Shown here in pieces: positions 13,868 to 56,500 of a stretch of 64,000 nucleotides of DNA. The DNA comes from Thecamonas trahens ATCC 50062 (Eukaryota; Protista; Apusomonadida): assembly GCF_000142905.1 (NCBI RefSeq), contig NW_013657679.1, positions 126,657 to 190,656 of the forward strand, read 5' to 3'. The position numbers and the translations under genes are program-made. The notes below the pieces were generated by a model. That model had not been told where the DNA came from. It worked only from the letters and a program-made list of their open reading frames with translations, and searched no databases. Each line of letters opens with the position of its first letter. Position 1 is the first letter of the stretch.

Positions 13868-15217
13868 CTATGGCGAGTCGGAGATGGAGCGCGACCGCGA
13901 GCGGGTGAACACCGTTCCACCGGTAGTTGTCGACGGCAGCGGGTGCTTGAACTGGACAATGATGAGCGACATGTTGTCGCGGCCGAGCGAAGTTGCCGAG
14001 TTTCGCGAGGCAAGGCAGCGGTCGAGAAGTGAAGAGGCAATGACTGGGAGGGCGAGGCCCTTTGCCAGGCCGCGCTTGACGTGCTTGATGACCTGTGCGT
14101 TGTTGAGCTTCTCAAAAATACCGTCACAAGCGACGACCAGAAAGTCGAGGGCAGGCACAAAGGGAATGGCTGTAAACTCGGGGTCGGCAATGACAGGTTG
14201 GTCCTTGCGCGGCAAGCCGGGCTTGTCCTTGATGGTGATGTCACCGATGGCGCGCGACATGGCGAGGCCGCCGACGCGGTAGTCGCCCGAGTCGGACTCG
14301 ACCGAGCCGCCGGCCCGCTGGATCCGCGCCATCTCGCCGGGGAGATTGACCAGGTGGTCGCGGGTAAGCGCAACGAGCTTGCCGCGGCGACACGCAAGGG
14401 CGCGCGAGTCGCCGACATTACCGACAAGGAGCATGTCCGAAGTAACAAGGGCAATGACGGCGGTTGAGCCCGGTGATCGCGAGCGAATGTGCGCAAAGGA
14501 CCGGCTGATGAGATCCTCATCAAGCGAGATGACTGCGCGCGAGATGGCAGACTTGAGGCTTGTCTTTGAGCGGCCATGCGCGGCGGCACGGATGCGATCC
14601 GGAAGCTCGTCGGCGCAGAGCTGTGAGACTTGGTCGCCGCCGTGGCCGTCGTACACGGCAAACATCTTGACAGGGTCGTGCGGGGTGTTGAAGAGGTCGA
14701 CCTCGACGGTGTGGGCATCCTCCTGGTGACTCCGCCAACCCTGCATCCATGCAGTGACCCATTCAAGTTCGCGAGTCGATCCGCTCTCCAGGTGCTTCTT
14801 GGTCACCGGCCTGCGCAGGTAGGTACCCTCAGACGACACGCTCGAGGAGCAGGTCGATCCAGTCGTCGCCGACCGCGACTCGCCCGACTCGGGCGACGAG
14901 CCGCCTGTTGACGACACACCTGAGTCCCATCGCGGCGCCAGTGCCACGCCAGGCATCGAGTGTGACGACGCGGACAAAGTATCCGGCGAGCTGGAGCCCG
15001 ACGATGTAGCCGAGGATGCCGAAGCCGAGGCTGAGGATGACGACGACGAAGACGATGAAGACGACGACGATGACGATGCAGGCCGCGCCATGCCATGAGG
15101 ATACAGACCAGCGGAGGAGTAAGCTGATGAAGAAGCCGAGTCTGAGTCTGAGGGCGATACCAATGCCGGGAACGACGAGCACGACGAGGTTGATGACGAG
15201 GCAGACGAAGCAGACAT
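13868..15217 (-). CDS. Protein phosphatase 2C with Ser-rich N-terminal extension
   Basis: MQGWRSHQEDAH, YDGHGG, NVGDSR, LAMSRAIGD, ACDGIF and DNMS motifs. Confidence 0.93.
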   Translation of the reverse strand: MSASSASSSTSSCSSFPALVSPSDSDSASSSAYSSAGLYPHGMARPASSSSSSSSSSSSSSSASASASSATSSGSSSPDTLSASSHSMPGVALAPRWDSGVSSTGGSSPESGESRSATTGSTCSSSVSSEGTYLRRPVTKKHLESGSTRELEWVTAWMQGWRSHQEDAHTVEVDLFNTPHDPVKMFAVYDGHGGDQVSQLCADELPDRIRAAAHGRSKTSLKSAISRAVISLDEDLISRSFAHIRSRSPGSTAVIALVTSDMLLVGNVGDSRALACRRGKLVALTRDHLVNLPGEMARIQRAGGSVESDSGDYRVGGLAMSRAIGDITIKDKPGLPRKDQPVIADPEFTAIPFVPALDFLVVACDGIFEKLNNAQVIKHVKRGLAKGLALPVIASSLLDRCLASRNSATSLGRDNMSLIIVQFKHPLPSTTTGGTVFTRSRSRSISDSP

Positions 15218-25003: not shown

Positions 25004-28000
25004 ATGGGCAAAGGCGTGCTCCACAACGTGGTCGTATGCTGCACAGGACTTGACCAAGTGGAAAAGGGATGCATCCACAAGGCCGTCAGCTGCCTCGGTG
25101 GCGTATTTACTCGCCAGCTGACTTGTACGCCCCCCCCCCCCCCCCCTCCCTCCTCGCTGTCTCCCTTCCCACCCATTTCGCTGCATTCTATCAACCATTG
25201 GCGGCCAAAAAGGGTCGCATTTTGCTGCCATGACTCACCCCCCTCCGCCCGCTTGCGCAGCTTCTGTCACGCACCTGGTAGCAGATAGAGTCGGATCGGA
25301 CAAGTACCGGGCAGCGCTTTCGATCTCGGCTGCAGTGGTGACCAAGCAGTGGGTGCTCAAGTGCAAGGCCGATGGACGGAGAGTGCCCGAGGCTATGTAC
25401 GCCCTCCCGCCTTTGGCCGGTCTGGTCATTTGCGTCACCCAGCTCGATGCTGATGATCGTGATCGCATCCGCTCCGTTGTCTCTGCAAACGGTGGAGACT
25501 ACATGCGCAATCTCGTGCCAGAGGCCACTCATCTCCTCGCCCTTCAGCCCTCGGGCACAAAGTATGAAAAGGCCGGCGAGTGGAACGTTCGCGTCGTCTC
25601 GCCGGCCTGGCTTGACGCATGCATCAAAGCTCGCGCCGCAGTCGATGAGACTCCGTTTGCCATTGCGCCTCCACCTGGTGTCACCGCTGGCGTCTCTTTA
25701 GCAGCCGAACCCGTGGATGAGTTGGCTTCGGGCGCCTGGCTCGAGGGCGAGCCGCCGTTTCTGCTCAACTCGCGTGACTCGCCTGTCCTCGACAAGCTGG
25801 ACGGACTTCTCGACGGCCGCAACGTATTCCTCCACAAGTTTGGCAGTCTGGAGCGCCGACGGATGACCCGCATTGTACTTGCGGCCGGTGGGCATGTGGT
25901 CGACGAGCCCGACTCGTCCGTCATCAACACCTGGGTCGTTCCCCGCCTCCCGTCGGCCGATGAGCTCGACGCCTTTGCCCGCTGGCGCCACCCGCCGCGC
26001 GCCTTTGTCTCGGGCAAGTGGCTCTGGGTACTCGCCCAATCAAGCGCTCTCCCAGACATTGGCGAGTTCACGCTGGCAACGATAGCGAGCGCGGCGCTGC
26101 CGCCACCAACGCCCACAGGACCCACAGCGTCCCCAAAGCCGTACGTCGAGCCGACTCCGACCCCGATGGTGCTCGAGCCGACGCCTCAGACGCTGCCAGA
26201 GTCGGGAGGCGTTGACTCGATGCTCGACCTTTACTCGGGCGGGAGCGGGCCGGGCGTCTCATCTCACCGCACGCTGCGGCGCACAATCTCACAGTCGCTG
26301 ATGGCCGACGCCGCGTCCCCGGTCCTTTTTGGTCGATCGCAGTTTGTGGTCGACGACCGAGTCACCGGCGACGAGGTTCTCCGTGCTATTCGTCGCGCTG
26401 GTGGCGCGCTGGTGCCGTCGTACAAGGCACTCTGCTCGTCCGCCGACCGCGAGAACTGTCCGCCGGGCTCGCGCATTGTCGCTCGCTACGTCGTGCTACC
26501 GCACGGTGTCTCTGCCTCGTCGCGCTCCTCGATTGTCGCGTCACTGGCTACCGCCGACGTGGCACTAGTCACTCCAGACTGGGTCCTCGCCTCGCTTGCT
26601 GCCAACGAGCTTGTCGACATCACGTCGTGCCCTCTCTTTACCCCGCTCCCGGTTGCTCTCCCGCTTGCGCCGCGATCCGACGTCGTTGTCTCAGTCACCG
26701 GGTGCTGGCCCGAGCGCGATGCCATCCGGCGTATGGCGGTGGCTCTGGGAGCGACCTTTGAAGAGCGGCTCTCACGGCGTGTGACCGTTCTCGTTTGTGA
26801 GGCCGATGCGCTGGCTAGTCCAGTCGAGCCTGCCTCGAAGATTGCAAAGGCGTTGCGATGGGGCGTGAGTCTTGTTCACTCGGGCTGGCTTCGCGACTCG
26901 CTCTGGGCCGGCTCACTCCTTGACTCTGCACGATATGCAGTTGGCAAGGCTTCGAACATACTCGACGGCGTTTGCGCGGTCATCGCCGATGAACTCCAGC
27001 TCAAGGGCCAGGCTCCAGAGCTCGAACGCCTGCTGACCTCACACGGGGCCACTGTTGCGCGCTCGATCCACACCACTGGTGTCACGCACTACATCGAGGA
27101 CGGCGAGAGCCGTACGTCCGCAGCTGCTGCTGCCGTCACCGCTGGCATTACACCGGTCTCGTCGCTCTGGGTCTACGACGCCATCGCCACGGGGACGCTG
27201 AGTCCTCGGGCGAGGGGAGGGCCGACTGCGGCGCGGAGCGGCTTTACGACCTCCCCGCCGGTCAAGCGCCAGCGGTCGCTGCTGGACCGCCGCCGGCCGC
27301 CGCCCGAGTCTCCAACCCTTCCGCAGCCGACGACCCAGGATCTGGATCCAGCCCCCACCGCTGCAGCCACCACACCGGGCGAGGCTGCCTCGGCGCTGCA
27401 GCGACTCGACAACGCGCGCAGTCTCTCGCAGCAGTCGGCCAAAAAAGCGACGCCGCGCCGCGCGCCGCTCGTCCGCGCGCCGGCAGCGCCGGTCTCGCTC
27501 GTCGCGCTCCGCGGCGCCGAGCCAGACGATTTCGACGCTGAGGGCGAGGGTGGGCAGGGACGCGAGGGCGATGGGCCAGGCGTGGTTGTCCACTACCGCC
27601 ATCGCGACGAGGACGATGGCCGTCGCAAGCGAGGCGGGCGGAAGCGAAAGCGGAAGGACGAGCTAGTCAACGAGAGCGTCGACAGCCTTTCGAGCCTCTT
27701 ACATGCCGCAGGCACCATTGTCTCGCGAAACACCGGCTCGCAGGCCTCACAGGGTTCGACAGGATCGGCACCAAGCAAGCCGCGGAGCCCGCCAATCTTC
27801 CTCCTCACTGGCTTTACCTCGACCGAGAAGGAGCAGCTCGTGCACGCGGTCAGCGCGCTCGGTGGCAGGGTCCTTGTCACGCGTGAATACGACCCGGGCT
27901 GCAGCCACATCCTCGTCGGCTCGCCGACGAGGTCAGAGAAGTTTCTCGGCGGGTGCGCGGCTGGCAAGTGGATGATGAAGGCCGAGTACATCGAGGCGTC

Positions 28001-37234: not shown

Positions 37235-38947
37235 ATGTCGGATGTGGACCCAGGATTGCTGGCCCAGTTCACGGCCATGACCGACGCTGACCCTGGGGTG
37301 GCTGCTGCCTTGTTAAGCGTAGGTTGGGCGAGGGAAGGCTGCTACCAGTGCGACTCGGGTGTGAAGGAGTGGTGCGGGGGGGAGAGGCATGGGAGCGGGG
37401 ATGGAGGGATAGCTAACGAGTAGTGATGGGTATCGAATGGATGGAGTGGGGGGGGGGAGTCGGGGCTGTTTCCATGGCGTGCAATGGGTGGCTGCGGCGT
37501 GATCTCGGACGGTGCGATGCTGGCGGTCTCTGAGCAGGACTATCAAGGCGATGTCAACATGGCGCTGGATGCATACATGAACATGGCTGGTGGAGCAGGA
37601 ACGGAGTCGACAGCATCGACGTCTTCGGGTGCACAGGCGCCGGTGACGCGGAAGAGGTCGCGGTCACAGTCGTCACGAACGAATCAAGTGTTGGAGGACG
37701 AGACGGCGACGCTCGAGGCGGAGGGCGGGGCTGGCGACGACGATGGAGTGCGCGCGCCGATCAAGCGCCGGCGGACGGCGTTGTACGATGACCTTGAGGC
37801 CACAGCCGGCTCGTCAACGACGATGGTGGCGCCGGGAAGACGACGGGCAGCGCAGTCAGCGCGGCGGACAGCATCCGACCTCCGCCGGGCGCTGGCGGGT
37901 GGGCTCGCTGGCGGGCTCACCGCCGCCGACGAGCTGCAGGCCTTTCGCGACTTTCGGCGCGAGGAAGCCTTGTTCAATAGGCTTGATCCGGGAGGGACCA
38001 AGCGTGAGAGCCTGGCGCGCATGTACCAGCCGCCACGGCACCTGATGACCGACGGCACGCTCGACGAGATCAAGAACCTGGCCGAGTCGACACATCGGTT
38101 TGTGCTCGTCAACGTGCAGGACATGAATGAGTTTGCATGCAACGTTCTCAACCGCGACGTGTGGTCCGATGAGCGGGTCGCGCGCGCTGTCCGCGAGTCG
38201 TTTGTCTTTTGGCAGATTCCGCATGCCTCGGAGGCCGGCGCTTACTTTTGCACTCTCTACCAGGTCACCTCATTCCCGTACCTTGCCATCCTCTACCCAC
38301 AAACTGGCGCTGTAGCCAAGGTGTGGGAGACGCCGCCGTCGGCTGACCAGCTCGTCGATGACCTCGGCGCATTTGTCCGCTCGGTGCTCGAGCCGCAGCA
38401 GGAGTCGACCATCATTGACGCCACCGAAGACGAGCAGCTCAAGGCTGCCATTCAGGCCTCACTGGCGGCGTCGACCGCCAGCGGGACCGAAACCGTCATC
38501 TCGCTCGATGACGACGACGACGACGATGACACTGGAGCCATCGCCATCTCTGGCTCGGACTCGGACTCGGACGTTGTCATCATTGTGCCCGACGACGATG
38601 ACGAAGACGACGACGATGACAACGAAGATGACGGCGATGAGGACAACATCAATGACGCCGGTGGCGACCAGGCTGCAGGCGTCGAGGTGCTGCCCCCTGA
38701 GCCCGCAGCAGGCACGCCGGACACGACCCGGATCAAGTTTGTGTTCCCCGATGGCACTTCGTTGGTCCGGCGGTTTGCACTTGACTCGCCGGTCCGCCAT
38801 CTGTTCGTTTTTGCCGCCGCTGCGCCCGGTGCGCCATCCGGCCTCGACCTCGTTGTCCCGCCGCGGAGCTCGCTGAGCAGCGAGCGCGAGCGCAGCCTTG
38901 CTGACGCCGGCATCCGCAACGCCATGATCCGCGTTGTGACCTCGTAA
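37235..38947 (+). CDS. UBXN7: UBA-UAS-UIM-UBX p97/Cdc48 adaptor (UBXN7/Ubx5-like); exons 37235-37318 and 37538-38947
   Basis: The UBA-like N-terminus is restored by splicing. Then LARMYQPP, EFACNVLNRDVW, TEDEQLKAAIQASL (UIM) and a C-terminal UBX domain. Confidence 0.88.
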
Positions 38948-39202
38948 AAGGCGTCGACTACTGGTGAGGCAGACAACTCGTTTACCAGCGCCGAACAGGC
39001 GGAAGGGAGAGTGCGGTGGGAGCGGAGACGGGAACGCGGATCAGAAGATGCAACAGATGGCCGCCAAGTAGGGATACTTGAACCAGAGCCGGGTGCCAGG
39101 ACGAGAGCAGCCGATACATTGCCTCGAGCCTGGATACGCCGGCTTGGGGCTGTCGAACTTGGCCCGCGCTTGTTTGCGGAGCCGAGTCCAGCAGCAATTA
39201 TG

Positions 39203-39290
39203 CTGCGAGCCATCGGGCGTCGGCGAGCACGGGTGGTGCCGTCGCAGTGGACGACCAAAGATTTCCCCGTGCCGCGTCATGAGCGCGCAG
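39203..39290 (-). promoter_or_regulatory. Eukaryotic SECIS element in the 3' UTR of the selenoprotein gene
   Basis: Minus strand reads CTGCGCGC-TC-ATGAC-GCGGCACGGG-G-AAA-...-CCCGTGCTCGC-CGAC-...-GCTCGCAG: helix I, AUGA/GA core, about 10-bp helix II, AAA loop and a possible apical mini-stem. Confidence 0.85.
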
Positions 39291-39435
39291 GCGCGATAAT
39301 CGCATAGCCTGCGCGGGTCGTTGCGGCTTCTACTTGGCGCATGCCGCCTCCACGCCGCACTCGCTCCCGCCAGCACGAATCGCGGGCGACGAGGCTGCGA
39401 AAGGAGGAAAATGCGAGGCAATCAATTGTGAGAAA

Positions 39436-39955
39436 CTACTCGGAGAAGCCCTTCTCCCTCATGGCCGCCACGAGCTCGTCCTCGGTAGGGAAGCCCTGGC
39501 CACTGAGCTTGGACCAGTAGACGGTGCCAGCGTCGTCGGTGACCTCAAAGGCCCCAGACCGCGGCGATCCCTCGGGATTGCCCGCCACTTCCACGTCCGA
39601 TCCAAATGCCTTTTGGATCCAGGACACGGCGCGGCGGTATCGGCTGAAGTACCCTCAGTTGGTACTGGGGAGCAGGTACAGGAGAGGGGGGGGGGTGAGT
39701 GAGGGAAGGGGAAAAAATTGTGGGCAACGGGTGCCACCCGCACACATTGGCCATGGCGCCACCCGCACACGTTGGCCATGACGCCAGCCGCAGCCGCAGC
39801 CGAGGTCGCGTTCGCAGGAGGCGGGAGGGGGTTGGAGAGCGAGGCAAGAGGGGAGAATAGGGGGGGGGGGGGGGGGGGGGATGTGGGGAGGGGGCGTGGG
39901 GGGAGAAGGAAGGAAAGGCGTACCAGTACTCGATGGTGATGCTCTTAGACGACAT
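39436..39955 (-). CDS. SELENOW: Selenoprotein W-like Rdx-family protein, 86 aa, CxxU motif (Sec TGA at 39655-39657); exons 39955-39924 and 39664-39436
   Basis: Spliced product MSSKSITIEYCTNUGYFSRYRRAVSWIQKAFG...PRSGAFEVT...WSKLSGQGFP carries the Rdx hallmarks IEYCxxUGY, GxFEV and SK...GFP. A SECIS lies downstream. Confidence 0.9.
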
Positions 39956-40145
39956 GTTGCAGGTGTGCGGCAGTGGAGTGTGAAAACTATCGAACGTTGG
40001 TCGATGGCTCGAGACTGCCAACCTTTTCATTGGGTCGGATTCGGTCAACGTCAGCCTTGGCTTGCAAGGTCGCCTTGCAGAGGCAAGACGGCGAAGAATA
40101 ATGGACCAGGGTACGAACGAGTACTTGATTCATATGTGCTGGATC

Positions 40146-41336
40146 CTACGATGACGATGACTCGTACGAGTAATCGTCGTCCTCAGCGTCGGGATCCGGT
40201 TCGTCCTCGTGCTCGCCGAGGTGCGGGATTGGGAAGCGGAGGATGGCGGCGATGCCGGTGAGCTGGGCCAGCTGCTCGCCCGAGACGTGGAGGGTGGAGA
40301 GAATGACGGCGTTGCCGCCCGACTCGCGGACTTCCTCGACAAGACCGACGTATTGGGCGCGCTCGGCGAGCGAATCGGCGCGGAAGAGGTTGTCGGTGAG
40401 GAGGAGGACCTCGACGGCGCCCATGGCGACGGCGAGGCGGACGTGGCGGAGGCCGTAGCAGGCCGAGTCCTCGTCAACGCGCAGCGTGTCAAAGAAACGG
40501 GCCAGAAGGGCGACCTCGGACGCCGCCTTGGTGTCGGACATCTGGGCGACAACGCCCGGGTCGGCCAGAACTTCCTTGAGCGCGTGTTTGTGGCCGGACG
40601 ACGAGTGGGCGAGGAGGAACTTGGGGCGGAACTCGAGCATGGCGCGGTCCTCGGCAGCGGTGGCCTTGGCCATGATGGCATCAAGGGCCGAGGCGTTGAC
40701 AAAGCCGGGTGAGGCGAGGATACAGACCTTGATGCGGTCGAGGTCGATGTGTGTCTTGAGCGCCACGTAGATGGCGGCAAAGAAGCGGGCAAGCGCCTTG
40801 TCGTGTTGTGCCGCCGAGTGCTTGCGCTTTCGTGGAATGGCCATTTCGATCTTTTGCCGAACGACAGTCATCGACGAGGTGATGAGGCAGACGTACGCGA
40901 GACCCTCTTGCATGACAACCGCAGCAACCTCGGCCGCCGATCTCACGTCACAAGCCTCCTTGAGCCGGTCGTGGTACATCGAGTCCCACTCATCCTTGCT
41001 CAACTTCAGCTTGCGGTTGAGCACAATGGTGTGCGAGTGGTACCCGCCAAGCTTGACGTCCTTGGACTCGGAGACGTTGCGCCCCGAGACGCGGATCTCC
41101 GAGTCCGCCGCCTCGTACGACACCCGCTCGACACGGATAGCGAGCCGGATCTTCTTGCGCTCGGCCTCGGACGAGCCCGTGGCGGTCGAGCGGACAACCT
41201 TGCGGACCGTCGACATTTCCAGCACATCTCCAGGCGCAATGAGGTTGTATACATGCCACAGATCGTCCAACTCGTTTGGAATGACCACCACATAGCCCGA
41301 GCCCGTCCGGTCGAACTTCTTGCCCACAAGCTTCAT
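40146..41336 (-). CDS. PELO: Pelota/Dom34 ribosome rescue factor
   Basis: MKL...DDLWHVYNLIAPGD...RKV, YHSHT, IPRKRK, ASPGFV and HVSGEQLAQLTGIAAILRFP. Confidence 0.96.
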   Translation of the reverse strand: MKLVGKKFDRTGSGYVVVIPNELDDLWHVYNLIAPGDVLEMSTVRKVVRSTATGSSEAERKKIRLAIRVERVSYEAADSEIRVSGRNVSESKDVKLGGYHSHTIVLNRKLKLSKDEWDSMYHDRLKEACDVRSAAEVAAVVMQEGLAYVCLITSSMTVVRQKIEMAIPRKRKHSAAQHDKALARFFAAIYVALKTHIDLDRIKVCILASPGFVNASALDAIMAKATAAEDRAMLEFRPKFLLAHSSSGHKHALKEVLADPGVVAQMSDTKAASEVALLARFFDTLRVDEDSACYGLRHVRLAVAMGAVEVLLLTDNLFRADSLAERAQYVGLVEEVRESGGNAVILSTLHVSGEQLAQLTGIAAILRFPIPHLGEHEDEPDPDAEDDDYSYESSSS

Positions 41337-52488: not shown

Positions 52489-53538
52489 ATGGACACTTAC
52501 TTTGACCTGGACGCGTTCCGGGCACGGGTGAGCAGCAGCACGGCCGAGGCGCATGCAACGGTGTACGGTGTGGTGTACTCGCCATGTGGTGAGTACATGG
52601 CTGCGGTGGACTCGCGGGGAGTGGTGAGGGTGTGGGCCCTGTCTCCTGCTCTCCAAGGCGAGTGGTGGGCCGAGGGTGAGGATGGCTCGCCCGGCGTGCC
52701 TCTTGTCACGGCTACTCTTCATCGAGGTCCCATCTACGGTGTCGAGCTGGCAGAGATTGGCAGCAAGGTTGTTCTGGCTACGGGTGCGTCTGATGGTCTC
52801 GGTCTCTGGGATTGGGCTGCGTTGCTGGCGAGTGGCGGTGAGGCGACGGCCGTGGCGGCGGCGCAGTTGCTGGCGCTGGATGCGGGCGATGTGGCTGGAA
52901 CGCCGGTAGAGGTCAACGCTGTGGCGCTGGATCCAGCATCAGGCCTGGTAGTTTGCGGAACGGGTGCCGGCGAAGTGCGGGCGTGGGACGTGGCGACCGG
53001 GAGCCACAGCTACACGCTTACCGGCCACACCGACATGGTGCTCGACGTGGGGCTGCGGGGCTCTGGCAGCGCCCCGGTGTCGGCGTCAGAAGACGGGACG
53101 GTCAAGCTGTGGGATGCCAAGGCCGGAGGATGCAGCGCGAGCCTGCAGCCCGGCGGTGGGGCGTGGGTTGGCGCGCTTGCGCTCGATCCGGACGCGTCGT
53201 GGCTGGCAACCGGCGGCGGTGACTGTGCGGTCTCGCTGTGGCACCTTGCGTCGCTGACGCAGACGACGACGATGGAAACCAAGGCCTGCGTCCAGACCGT
53301 GGTCTTTGCCGACGAGCACGTGCTGGCTGGCGGAGCGAGCCCGTGGCTTTACCGCTTTAACATCAACGGGCGGCTGGCGGCCAAGCTGCCTGTGAGTGCG
53401 AGCTCGGTGTTTGCGGTCGGGCTCAACGAGGCGAGCCCGCGGAACAGGGTGATTGTGGCCGGCGGCAACACGCCAGTCCTCGACGTGTACACCAACTACT
53501 TCCACCGGGCGTTTGGTCTCCCGCTCTCGACCAGCTAG
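52489..53538 (+). CDS. THOC6: WD40 protein, THO complex subunit 6-like
   Basis: WD repeats (EVNA, GHTDMVL, SASEDGTVKLWD, WLATGGG..VSLWHL) and a C-terminal DVYTNY..R similar to THOC6. Confidence 0.75.
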   Translation: MDTYFDLDAFRARVSSSTAEAHATVYGVVYSPCGEYMAAVDSRGVVRVWALSPALQGEWWAEGEDGSPGVPLVTATLHRGPIYGVELAEIGSKVVLATGASDGLGLWDWAALLASGGEATAVAAAQLLALDAGDVAGTPVEVNAVALDPASGLVVCGTGAGEVRAWDVATGSHSYTLTGHTDMVLDVGLRGSGSAPVSASEDGTVKLWDAKAGGCSASLQPGGGAWVGALALDPDASWLATGGGDCAVSLWHLASLTQTTTMETKACVQTVVFADEHVLAGGASPWLYRFNINGRLAAKLPVSASSVFAVGLNEASPRNRVIVAGGNTPVLDVYTNYFHRAFGLPLSTS

Positions 53539-56500
53539 TTGACCTTGATCTTGGAGGCTGGCTTGGACGAGCGGCGCGAGTAGCGGTAGGCGGCAAAGAG
53601 GAGGGCGTTGAGAGCGGCGCCGACGGCAACAGTCCAGCGGACCGAAACGCCTTCGTGGACGTGTTGCTCCTCCTGCACCGCATTGCAGTGGTAGTGGGCG
53701 GCGTAGCCTACAAACTCGGCGGCCTGGTGAACAAATCGCGCGGCCTTGCCGAGGAGCACGCCCGAGACGAGCGACGCGAGCTCATCGTCGGTGTGGGCCG
53801 AGACCCGCGGCGAGGCGGCGGTAAACTCGGCAGCAGCCCAGAGCGAGCGGACGTCGTCATAGGCGGTGCGGAGGGCGTCCATGGCCGGCGAGGCAAAAGC
53901 TGGCGCGTTGTACTCGGTAACGGCCACGGACGCGAGATGTGCCAGCGCTGTGTTCATCGACGACCGCGCCGCGAGCAGTGCGGCGACAGCGTTGTTGAAC
54001 TTGACGAGGCCGGTCTGGTGCCGCGAAATCCGCCACGCGCCATCGCAGGCCGAGAGCGGCGAGGTGCCTGTGGCGTAGAGCCAGTTGTCGAGGGCGCGCC
54101 GGGCGCCAGGCGCCGCGGCTGGCGGGAGGCCGCCGACAAGGCGGAGCACGGCGGCAGTGATGGCCTTGGTCGGCGCGCGGAGGTTGACAAGCTTGGACGC
54201 GCCGTTGCAGTGCATGTACGACTCCCACTCGGTGTGCGGCGACTGAACGCCGAGGACGACGCCGTCAACGACAGCCACCTGCGACGTGGCGTCGAGGAAG
54301 AACGGGTGGGTCGAGTCTGTGGAGAAGAGAACAATGGGGACAACGAGCGAAGCGCCACTGGCCTTGCCACCCGAGGAGCGCGCGGCCGCGTTCGCGGCTG
54401 GTGCGGTCTGAGCGAGGAGGGCGGCGAGGGTGGCCGAGTCGATGACTCGGCGAGTCGACGATTCGATGGAGCCTTCGAGGCTCAGGCGCGGGATGCGGAC
54501 CGTGGTCTGCGAGGCGGCGACCGCAACGGCGAGGCCGGGATCGAGGTCGAGCGAGCGGCGGGCGAGCGAGAAGGCAAAGTGCTGCCACGGCAGGCGGAGG
54601 CTCGCCATCTGAGCCTTGAACGAGTTAAAGTCAAAGGCGGTCGGCCCGATGGGGTCGTAGCTTTCGTGCGCGACGACAACGACGACATTAAAGTTGACAA
54701 CCTTGGCGGCGGCAAAGGCGCCTCCGGCAGCTACAAAGCTTGGGTCAAGCGGCGGCGTGACCACGTGCTTGATACCAGCGTCGAGAACGCCGGCGAGCTT
54801 GGTGAGGAAGAGCGAAGCCGCGAGCTGTCCGGAAGACGTCGGCTCGGCGTGGGTGTTGGGGTCGGTGACAAGGATCACGTCCTCGGGCTGCGGGTTGACA
54901 ACAGCGTCGCGTGCTGCTGGATCTGAAGCTTCTTGGAGGGCGGCGAGGCGGGCGCGGAGCTTGGCGCAGAACGGCGGGAGCGAGATGCGGGGTGTGCCGG
55001 GCGGGGTGGCAAAGAGCGACTCGTCGCAAAACTTGGCAAGGAACGATGAGACAGTGTCTGGCTCGGACATGGCCTCGATGGCGGCGTCGGACGGGACGTG
55101 GCGGCCACCTGATGCAGCCGAAGCCCCGCCCTGCGACACAGCGTGTTCGGCAGACCAGGCGGTGAGCGCGGCGGCGGTGGTGTCCTCGAGCGACGGCAGC
55201 GAGTCGCGAGTCTTGAGCCCGTGGCCGCCGAGGCGCGGGCCCCACTCAAAGGGACCGGCGTGAAGGTCGAGGACGGCAAACGCGGAGGAGGAGACCCAGA
55301 GGTCAACAAGGCACTCGGACGTAAAGTCGAGCTCAGTCTCTGCGGCGAGGAGCGACTCGACATACGCCGAGTCCTCGAGCGAGCCTGCGCCGAGGTAGCG
55401 GAGGAGGAGGTGGACGAGGTTAGTGCTCGTGTCAGCGCTGGGCGGAAAGATACGCGCGCAGGGGACGGCCGCATCAGCGTCGCACGTGATGATGCGAAGC
55501 GGCGAGGTTGGGGCTGGGTTGAGAAGCCCAGACCAGCGCGAGCCCGAGTGGTGCGACGGCGGATGAACGGGAGCGTAGCGCCAGCCGTGGTCGGCCATGT
55601 AGGCAGAAATCCACTCCTCAGCGGCGGTGCCGAGATACTCGAAAGAGAGTGGGCCGTCGGAGGCAATATACTGCTGCTGGCGAGAGTAGATGATGGCGTC
55701 GGAGAGCGGCGCAGCCGATGCGAGGGCGCGATGAGCGTACGAGACCGGGAAATCGTCGGATGTTGGCAGTGCCCACTCACGAGGACGGTACTCAGAGTCG
55801 AGTAAGGCCTCCAACTCGTGACGCGACTCGTCCAGTTGAACGAGCTCGTCCTCGGTGAGGCCACGGGCATAGCCGTAGCGGACAGAGGCAGCTGGGTCGA
55901 TAAACTCGCCGGGCTTTGCGACGACAAAGGTGAAAGCGTCGTCGAGGCCCATGCCGGCCAGAAAGTCGCCGAGCACGCCCTCAAAGGCCAGCGCGTCGAC
56001 AGTGACCGTCTGGGCTGGGAGATCCGGCCCATCGTCGCCCCACACAGAGCGCCAGGGATCGGCACCAGGGTCCGGGCCCGGACGAGCCAGTGAGAGGACG
56101 AGGGCATCAAAGAAGCGAGCGACCTGCGGCGAGGCCTCGATGAGCCGGAAATGGTACGAGTAGTGCGCGTTCGGCACCACACCATCCGTCGTCCGCATGG
56201 CAAGCATGTGCTCGATGTGCTTGAGCCATGGCGCAGCGGCCGCCGCGGCGAGCGATGGTTTGCTCGGCGGAGCAAAGCCTAGCAGGAGCACGTTGACCAA
56301 GCGCGGAACAACCAGCGGTGGAATCGGAGGCAGCTCGAGGTCTGGCCGCGGCAGATCAGACGGATTCGGAGGTGTAGGTGACGCTCCAGTCTCTGCCGTC
56401 GGCTTGGGACTCGTTCTCCCGCGGTAGCGAAGCGCCGCCGACTCGAGAGACGCCAGCAGTGCGTCCATGTCGGGCGTGGTAGAGCCATGGGTGGGGAGGC

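Follow-up and report, generated by a model that had tools for sequence, protein, structure and literature searches.

Evidence for an intron-split, SelW-like selenoprotein gene with a near-canonical type-2 SECIS element in Thecamonas trahens

The minus strand of a 64,000-nucleotide stretch of Thecamonas trahens DNA (hereafter the window) very probably carries an expressed gene of two exons whose product is a SelW-like selenoprotein of the Rdx family, 86 residues long and of ~9.5 kDa, with a SECIS element at 39290-39203; the host is a unicellular eukaryote with a GC-rich genome. In the model that we favor, splicing of 39924 to 39664 creates the Cys codon with which a C-T-N-U motif begins, and the UGA three codons after that Cys codon would be recoded to selenocysteine by the standard eukaryotic mechanism, in which the type-2 SECIS at 39290-39203 is expected to recruit SBP2 together with eEFSec carrying Sec-tRNA(Sec)(UCA). 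The product would be a small, soluble thiol/selenol oxidoreductase of thioredoxin fold, its CxxU redox center presumably located, like that of SelW and MIEN1/Rdx12, between β-strand 1 and helix 1. Selenocysteine insertion and redox function are predicted here from the family, and binding of SBP2 to the element would follow the same mechanism.

Results

Sequence and translation of the pieces give a gene of two exons on the minus strand with an 86-residue product. The coding part of exon 1 (39924-39955) runs from the ATG at 39955-39953 through MSSKSITIEY to TG, the first two bases of a Cys codon, so that its 3′ end reads ...GAG TAC TG at 39924 and is followed by GTACGC. The intron (39665-39923) is 259 nt long, lies in phase 2 and is bounded by GTACGC...CCCCAG. 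The coding part of exon 2 (39436-39664) begins at 39664 with T ACC AAC TGA GGG TAC; its first base completes the Cys codon, after which come Thr, Asn, the UGA and a further 72 residues (GYFSRY...GFSE) before the stop TAG at 39438-39436, and it is translated as TN*GYFSRY...GAFEV...SKLSGQGFP...FSE*. The in-frame TGA, predicted to be read as the U of C-T-N-U, occupies 39655-39657, and the complete spliced reading is MSSKSITIEY-C-T-N-U-GYFSRYRRAVSWIQKAFGSDVEVAGNPEGSPRSGAFEVTDDAGTVYWSKLSGQGFPTEDELVAAMREKGFSE. The exon ends had been placed at TAC TG|GTACGC and CAG|T ACC AAC TGA GGG TAC in a preliminary description of this DNA, and all of those coordinates are correct in the sequence.

The splice between 39924 and 39664 is real. 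In our searches the exon pieces were used separately, and the only reading at full length came from translating a natural intron-less contig as it stands, the metagenomic contig L013 (689 nt, coverage ~5), from which the intron is exactly missing and in which 39924 is joined to 39664 in the reading ...ATC GAG TAC TG|T ACC AAC TGA GGG TAC.... The junction proposed in advance was thus recovered to the base. L013 and two further metagenomic contigs, L012 and L014, are 99.5% identical to the window locus, and the three SNPs that they share relative to the window indicate a common source in a single further strain or population. L012 and L014 are of genomic type, with the 3′ part of the intron retained and a different 5′ part. 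Since intron-containing and intron-less forms coexist in one population, L013 points to an mRNA origin.

Some features of these contigs are recorded here for completeness. The intron of the window includes a run of 21 C (C21, 39880-39860) and, at 39780-39731, a tandem duplication of 25 nt, and that of the other strain (L012, L014) is unalignable with it upstream of ~39712, where it consists of ACC/ATCC repeats, while exons and UTR remain 99.5% identical. L013 begins (L013:1-7) with GGCC immediately 5′ of the ATG, where the genome has CAAC; the difference could be an artefact arising at the end of the assembly or of a cDNA, or could hint at a very short 5′UTR.

We give next to no credence to the explanation that an error in sequencing or assembly turned a Cys codon (TGT or TGC) into this TGA, the gene then encoding a CxxC Rdx protein. 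The assembly may hold single-base errors, and a paralogue described below has an apparent 1-nt frameshift, but the suspected assembly errors are indels rather than substitutions. Moreover, the window and the three independent metagenomic contigs all show the TGA, as do the orthologue contigs from four other samples.

The protein belongs to the Rdx family. The piece after the UGA, taken alone, matches Pfam PF10262 (Rdx) with 30.5 bits against a cut-off of 22.6, over positions 12-73 of the 74-position profile, and NCBIfam TIGR02174 (SelT/SelW/SelH) with 37.2 bits against a cut-off of 34.2. Together with the translation, these matches bear out the earlier reading of IEYCTN*GY as in frame with an Rdx body (GAFEV, SK...GFP). 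In a six-frame search of the genome with the Rdx profile, the match starts with the TGA codon, which falls at profile position 10; for the orthologue and the paralogue, searched with their post-UGA pieces, it starts at profile position 11. A profile made from the post-UGA pieces matched the NMR structure of MIEN1/C17orf37 (Rdx12) with an E value of 9.1e-7 (31.9 bits, 66 profile positions) and mouse SelW with an E value of 0.006; the match of the single sequence to SelW was weak (12.5 bits). In these alignments, the Gly after the UGA, which is the first profile position, falls on the residue after the CxxC of MIEN1 and on that after Sec13 of SelW. The UGA is homologous to the second position of the CxxC/CxxU motif of MIEN1 and SelW, and the profile matches to 2LJK and 2NPB suggest a thioredoxin-like fold. 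We saw neither an N-terminal extension nor a signal peptide or membrane segment in the protein. Its nearest annotated atlas cluster is "selenoprotein W-like" (score 0.86), which we take as a lead only. Pfam gave no match for the pre-UGA pieces of the paralogues, which at 25 residues were too short.

Four other samples yielded contigs (L005-L008) with an orthologue that is 50% identical to the window protein. Its exon 1 is of the same shape, and its Cys codon is likewise split by a phase-2 intron, reading ATT GAG TAC TG|GTACG...CAG|C ACT AGC TGA GGT TAC; the TGA is kept in the motif CTS-TGA, and a second intron lies further on. A second small Rdx gene of the T. trahens genome (L009; contig 61, ~25978-26118, minus strand) is an intronless paralogue that reads MGGLFSAPEPVPEGTPAIHIEYCTS-TGA-GYSGRY..., that is, CTS-TGA-GY, with C-T-S-U at the predicted redox site, and its orthologue in another organism (L022) likewise keeps the TGA in CTS-TGA-GY. 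Homologues had been expected to carry Cys or Sec at the TGA position, and they do: TGA in L005-L008, L009 and L022, Cys in MIEN1 and Sec13 in SelW. L009 has an apparent one-base frameshift after FEITDYHK, where the L022 protein (P0125) continues straight through (HKNTLFFSKL); it looks like a homopolymer assembly error. A more distant orthologue, from an AT-richer organism, is found at L023:515-970 (VKNVEVVGNREDPRTSAFEVTDDIGTTYWSKL...). The upstream exons that would carry its CxxU were sought in L023 and not located, and its 3′UTR contains a long, near-perfect hairpin (GUCAGC...UCGAAAGG / CCUUUCGA...GCUGAC).

It is quite improbable that the TGA is a true stop, leaving a decaying pseudogene, or only a 63-residue open reading frame or a 13-residue peptide. 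Gene callers and protein databases are on the side of such a stop: the list of open reading frames shows at the locus only a GTG-started 63-aa fragment (39436-39627), and a large protein collection has only 63-aa and 52-aa fragments of the gene. That gene callers would truncate the gene had been foreseen. TGA is also a common stop in this genome. Yet the 63-aa frame would start too late to include the redox motif and the opening strand of the Rdx fold, and the frame before the TGA, I-x-I-E-Y-C-T-[NS], is kept across the intron in an orthologue of only 50% identity and in the two paralogous loci, with the TGA always at the same site. The presence of a SECIS-shaped element and of the Sec machinery, described below, likewise speaks against a true stop and for the selenoprotein.

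The 3′UTR of the gene extends at least over 39013-39435 (minus strand), as L013 is continuous from the stop to ~39013. Within L013 and this UTR lies the type-2 SECIS element at 39203-39290 (minus strand), which is supported by folding, a scan and a shuffle control. Helix I pairs 39290-39282 with 39211-39203 and carries one C.U mismatch. In the fold, the 5′ core AUGAC (39280-39276) is followed by a 10-bp helix II (39275-39266 with 39233-39223, U39226 being bulged), an unpaired G+AAA (39265-39262), a 6-bp helix III (39255-39250 with 39243-39238) with a 6-nt loop, and the 3′ core CGAC (39222-39219). The sole ATGA of the 488-nt 3′UTR (39280-39277) is 155 nt past the stop, and the AUGA/GA core, 10-bp helix II and unpaired AAA reported earlier for a stem-loop ~150 nt past the stop were all found. 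Helix I lies outside the unconstrained optimum fold; with helix I enforced, the energy is -34.4 kcal/mol, nearly equal to the -35.1 kcal/mol of the constrained optimum. The three SNPs of L013 in the 3′UTR (39426, 39375 and 39156) all fall outside the element.

The stem-loop at 39290-39203 is statistically unusual and SECIS-shaped beyond chance. Our own pattern-and-fold scan, modeled on the published SECISearch pattern (AUGA, helix II of 9-13, AA, GA, helix I of at least 6/7), returned this element as the one good match on both strands of the window (128 kb), and good matches were obtained in 0 of 3000 dinucleotide-preserving shuffles of the UTR. The AUGA/GA quartet, a helix II of 9-13 bp, the unpaired AA, helix I and a 3′UTR position were all present. 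The quartet, the 10-bp helix II, helix I and the 3′UTR position are held in common with known eukaryotic type 2 elements (RF00031, SECISearch3), and the unpaired AAA 12 nt after the core and the extra helix III are also type-2-like. In contrast, the AUGAC/CGAC core, the 32-nt apical part and an Rfam score below the reportable level set it apart. The core consensus in the description of SECISearch3 is UGAN/KGAW (PMC3753652); the 5′ UGAC fits UGAN, and the 3′ CGAC departs from KGAW, having C for K and C for W. Searched with Rfam cmscan at E<=10, positions 38900-40100 gave chance matches only and no SECIS. This silence has little weight because SECIS_1 (RF00031; gathering threshold 35 bits) finds no SECIS in the whole genome. 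The earlier term "canonical SECIS" overstates the case, given the core, the long apical part, the type 2 form, the mismatched helix I and the silence in Rfam; we prefer to describe the element as a type-2 SECIS that is near-canonical and has a core typical of the lineage.

Six SECIS-like stem-loops downstream of TGA-containing genes of this genome share the pattern NUGAC...CGA[C/G], in which a C stands opposite a C beside the G.A pairs. Apart from the window element, these are AUGAC/CGAC 67 nt after the stop of SelT (L011:1744-1798, plus strand); AUGAC/CGAG (L015:2196-2255, plus strand, +153 nt) and CUGAC/CGAG (L020:1869-1926, plus strand, +42 nt) behind two glutathione peroxidase (GPx) genes; AUGAC/CGAG ~250 nt beyond the family match in a third GPx gene, whose stop codon was not located (L016:1163-1252, minus strand); and UUGAC/CGAG at the Rdx paralogue (L009:1209-1266, minus strand), +132 nt from the end of the second, shifted frame. 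Two of the six (L020 and L009) have C or U before the UGA. Rfam SECIS_1 detected none of the six. The stem-loop in the 3′UTR of the orthologue reached 31.4 bits with SECIS_1 (E 0.006), against the gathering score of 35, and was recovered by our own scan too. MAFFT gave no structural alignment of the genome's elements because their bulges sit at different places, and a single-sequence covariance model made from the SelT element, with which the L016 element turned up, did not recover the window element at E<=10. It is conceivable, at somewhat less than an even chance, that the lineage uses a derived SECIS core (NUGAC / CGA[C/G]), of which there are at least six examples and to which SBP2 is perhaps co-adapted; if so, elements with the derived core would escape Rfam SECIS_1 across the genome. 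Two other stem-loops in the window, at 14076 and 53254 (both plus strand), have a UGAC/CGAC core with 10-11 bp (-14 and -15 kcal/mol); the one at 53254 sits inside a long open frame, and both are probably due to chance.

These comparisons bear on a further possibility, that the selenoprotein gene is real and its functional SECIS lies elsewhere or has another form, which we regard as unlikely. It could draw on the missing matches to Rfam and to the single-sequence covariance model, on the CGAC 3′ core outside KGAW and on the imperfect helix I. Against it, the UTR offers no second ATGA, the scan no second good match and the shuffles none at all; the NUGAC/CGAS core recurs 42-155 nt past the SelT and GPx stops and the frame end of the Rdx paralogue, and again below the family match of the GPx in L016; and a stem with the core UGAC/CGAS occurs only 3 times in the 128 kb of the window. 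The stem-loop at 39290-39203 thus remains our preferred SECIS.

Most of the Sec machinery to be expected if the organism decodes UGA as Sec was found in the genome (28.7 Mb, 131 contigs). A tRNA-Sec scored 74.4 bits and was called tRNA-SeC by ARAGORN, with anticodon tca (UCA); SepSecS scored 285 bits, SelD 192.8 bits and eEFSec domain III 127.7 bits. Searches with TIGR03575 and PF08433, which work exon by exon and so do not show absence, found no PSTK; the single PF08433 locus of the genome, on contig 51, is probably KTI12. Within the window, TGA closes 26 of 52 long open frames and so is an ordinary stop in this genome; the UGA at the SelW-like locus would be recoded without genome-wide reassignment. 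Four GPx loci (L015, L016, L019/L020 and L021; contigs 37, 40, 12 and 41) have one in-frame TGA each, at the catalytic position in ...NVAS[YFK]-TGA-GLT..., and two further GPx loci have none. SelT (L011; contig 38, ~53300-54130, plus strand) reads C-Q-S-TGA-G-Y and has a signal/anchor region and a hydrophobic insert. Sep15/SelM (PF08806) gave no match in the genome, but the controls were equally silent.

Discussion

Rdx-family membership holds. The label "SelW-like", given to the gene in the preliminary description, is reasonable but provisional as to subfamily, MIEN1/Rdx12 scoring above SelW. SelW (SELENOW; mouse, 2NPB) and the window protein are both of about 87 residues without an extension, and both have CxxU some ten residues from the N-terminus followed by G-Y, then a G-x-F-E-V strand with S-K after it. 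The Sec of SelW is decoded by way of a 3′UTR SECIS, and the same arrangement is predicted for the window gene. The motifs themselves differ, being C-G-A-U in SelW and C-T-N-U here, and the C-terminal half of the window protein (SKLSGQGFPTEDELV) is closer to MIEN1 than to SelW. MIEN1/C17orf37/Rdx12 (2LJK), a Cys-containing counterpart of fish and frog SelW2, is the best solved relative and has GAFE[IV], SKL..GFP and [DE]L[IV]xA[IM]R in common with the window protein, but it has CxxC and an N-terminal extension of ~30 residues, where the window protein has CxxU and no extension. MIEN1 also carries a C-terminal prenylation tail. Published work describes Rdx12 as remotely homologous to the selenoprotein SelW2, with Cys in place of Sec, and SelW2/Rdx12 relatives are known in vertebrates (PMC3316567).

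Within the same genome, SelT shares with the window gene the Rdx family, CxxU-G-Y and a downstream AUGAC/CGAC SECIS-like element. SelT architecture is excluded for the window protein, which has neither the signal/anchor region nor the long hydrophobic insert that separates the halves of the SelT fold. SelH (SELENOH) has the motif C-T-S-U, which the orthologue and paralogue described here also have, and its N-P-x-x-P-R-R-G-S-F-E-V resembles NPEGSPRSGAFEV of the window protein, a likeness that is a lead only. SelH has an N-terminal nuclear/AT-hook extension, absent in the window protein, and the U-G-Y after the Sec position here is SelW/SelT-like.

Among the selenoproteins of eukaryotes, SelW is one of the most widely distributed (PMC2375036). 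Most eukaryotes that use Sec are known to have a SelW-like selenoprotein, so the gene brings no new biology and is a genuine but unexceptional representative of its widespread family. What is gained is, first, annotation, the gene being missing or truncated in protein collections and its relatives likewise represented by fragments. Second, four GPx genes, SelT and two SelW-like genes support a sizeable selenoproteome in an orphan protist that, judged by the relatives of its Pelota protein, is probably allied to Amorphea and neither a fungus nor an alga; a literature search for Thecamonas with "selenoproteome" found no paper linking the two. Finally, a simple core-plus-helix scan finds SECIS elements in this genome where Rfam SECIS_1 does not, and with models trained on metazoans, selenoprotein surveys of deep-branching eukaryotes will under-count.

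The surroundings of the gene are consistent with a constrained 3′UTR, as had been suggested from a convergent gap of about 490 bp where most others are under 25 bp. Downstream lies a convergent UBX/thioredoxin-like (UBX-domain) gene with its stop at 38947, and the 488 nt between the two genes are almost wholly 3′UTR of the SelW-like gene. By a crude open-frame survey, which left a few larger gaps unclear, the other clean convergent pairs of the window (2577/2593, 28478/28501, 43937/43949 and 53538/53535) are 15, 22, 11 and -4 nt apart, so that their 3′UTRs must overlap on opposite strands. That the long gap is kept by the SECIS fits these distances, roughly measured as they are. Upstream, on the same strand, is a Pelota gene (stop at 40146-40148) with ~50% identity to its best named relatives, which are found in animals, Capsaspora and Acanthamoeba.
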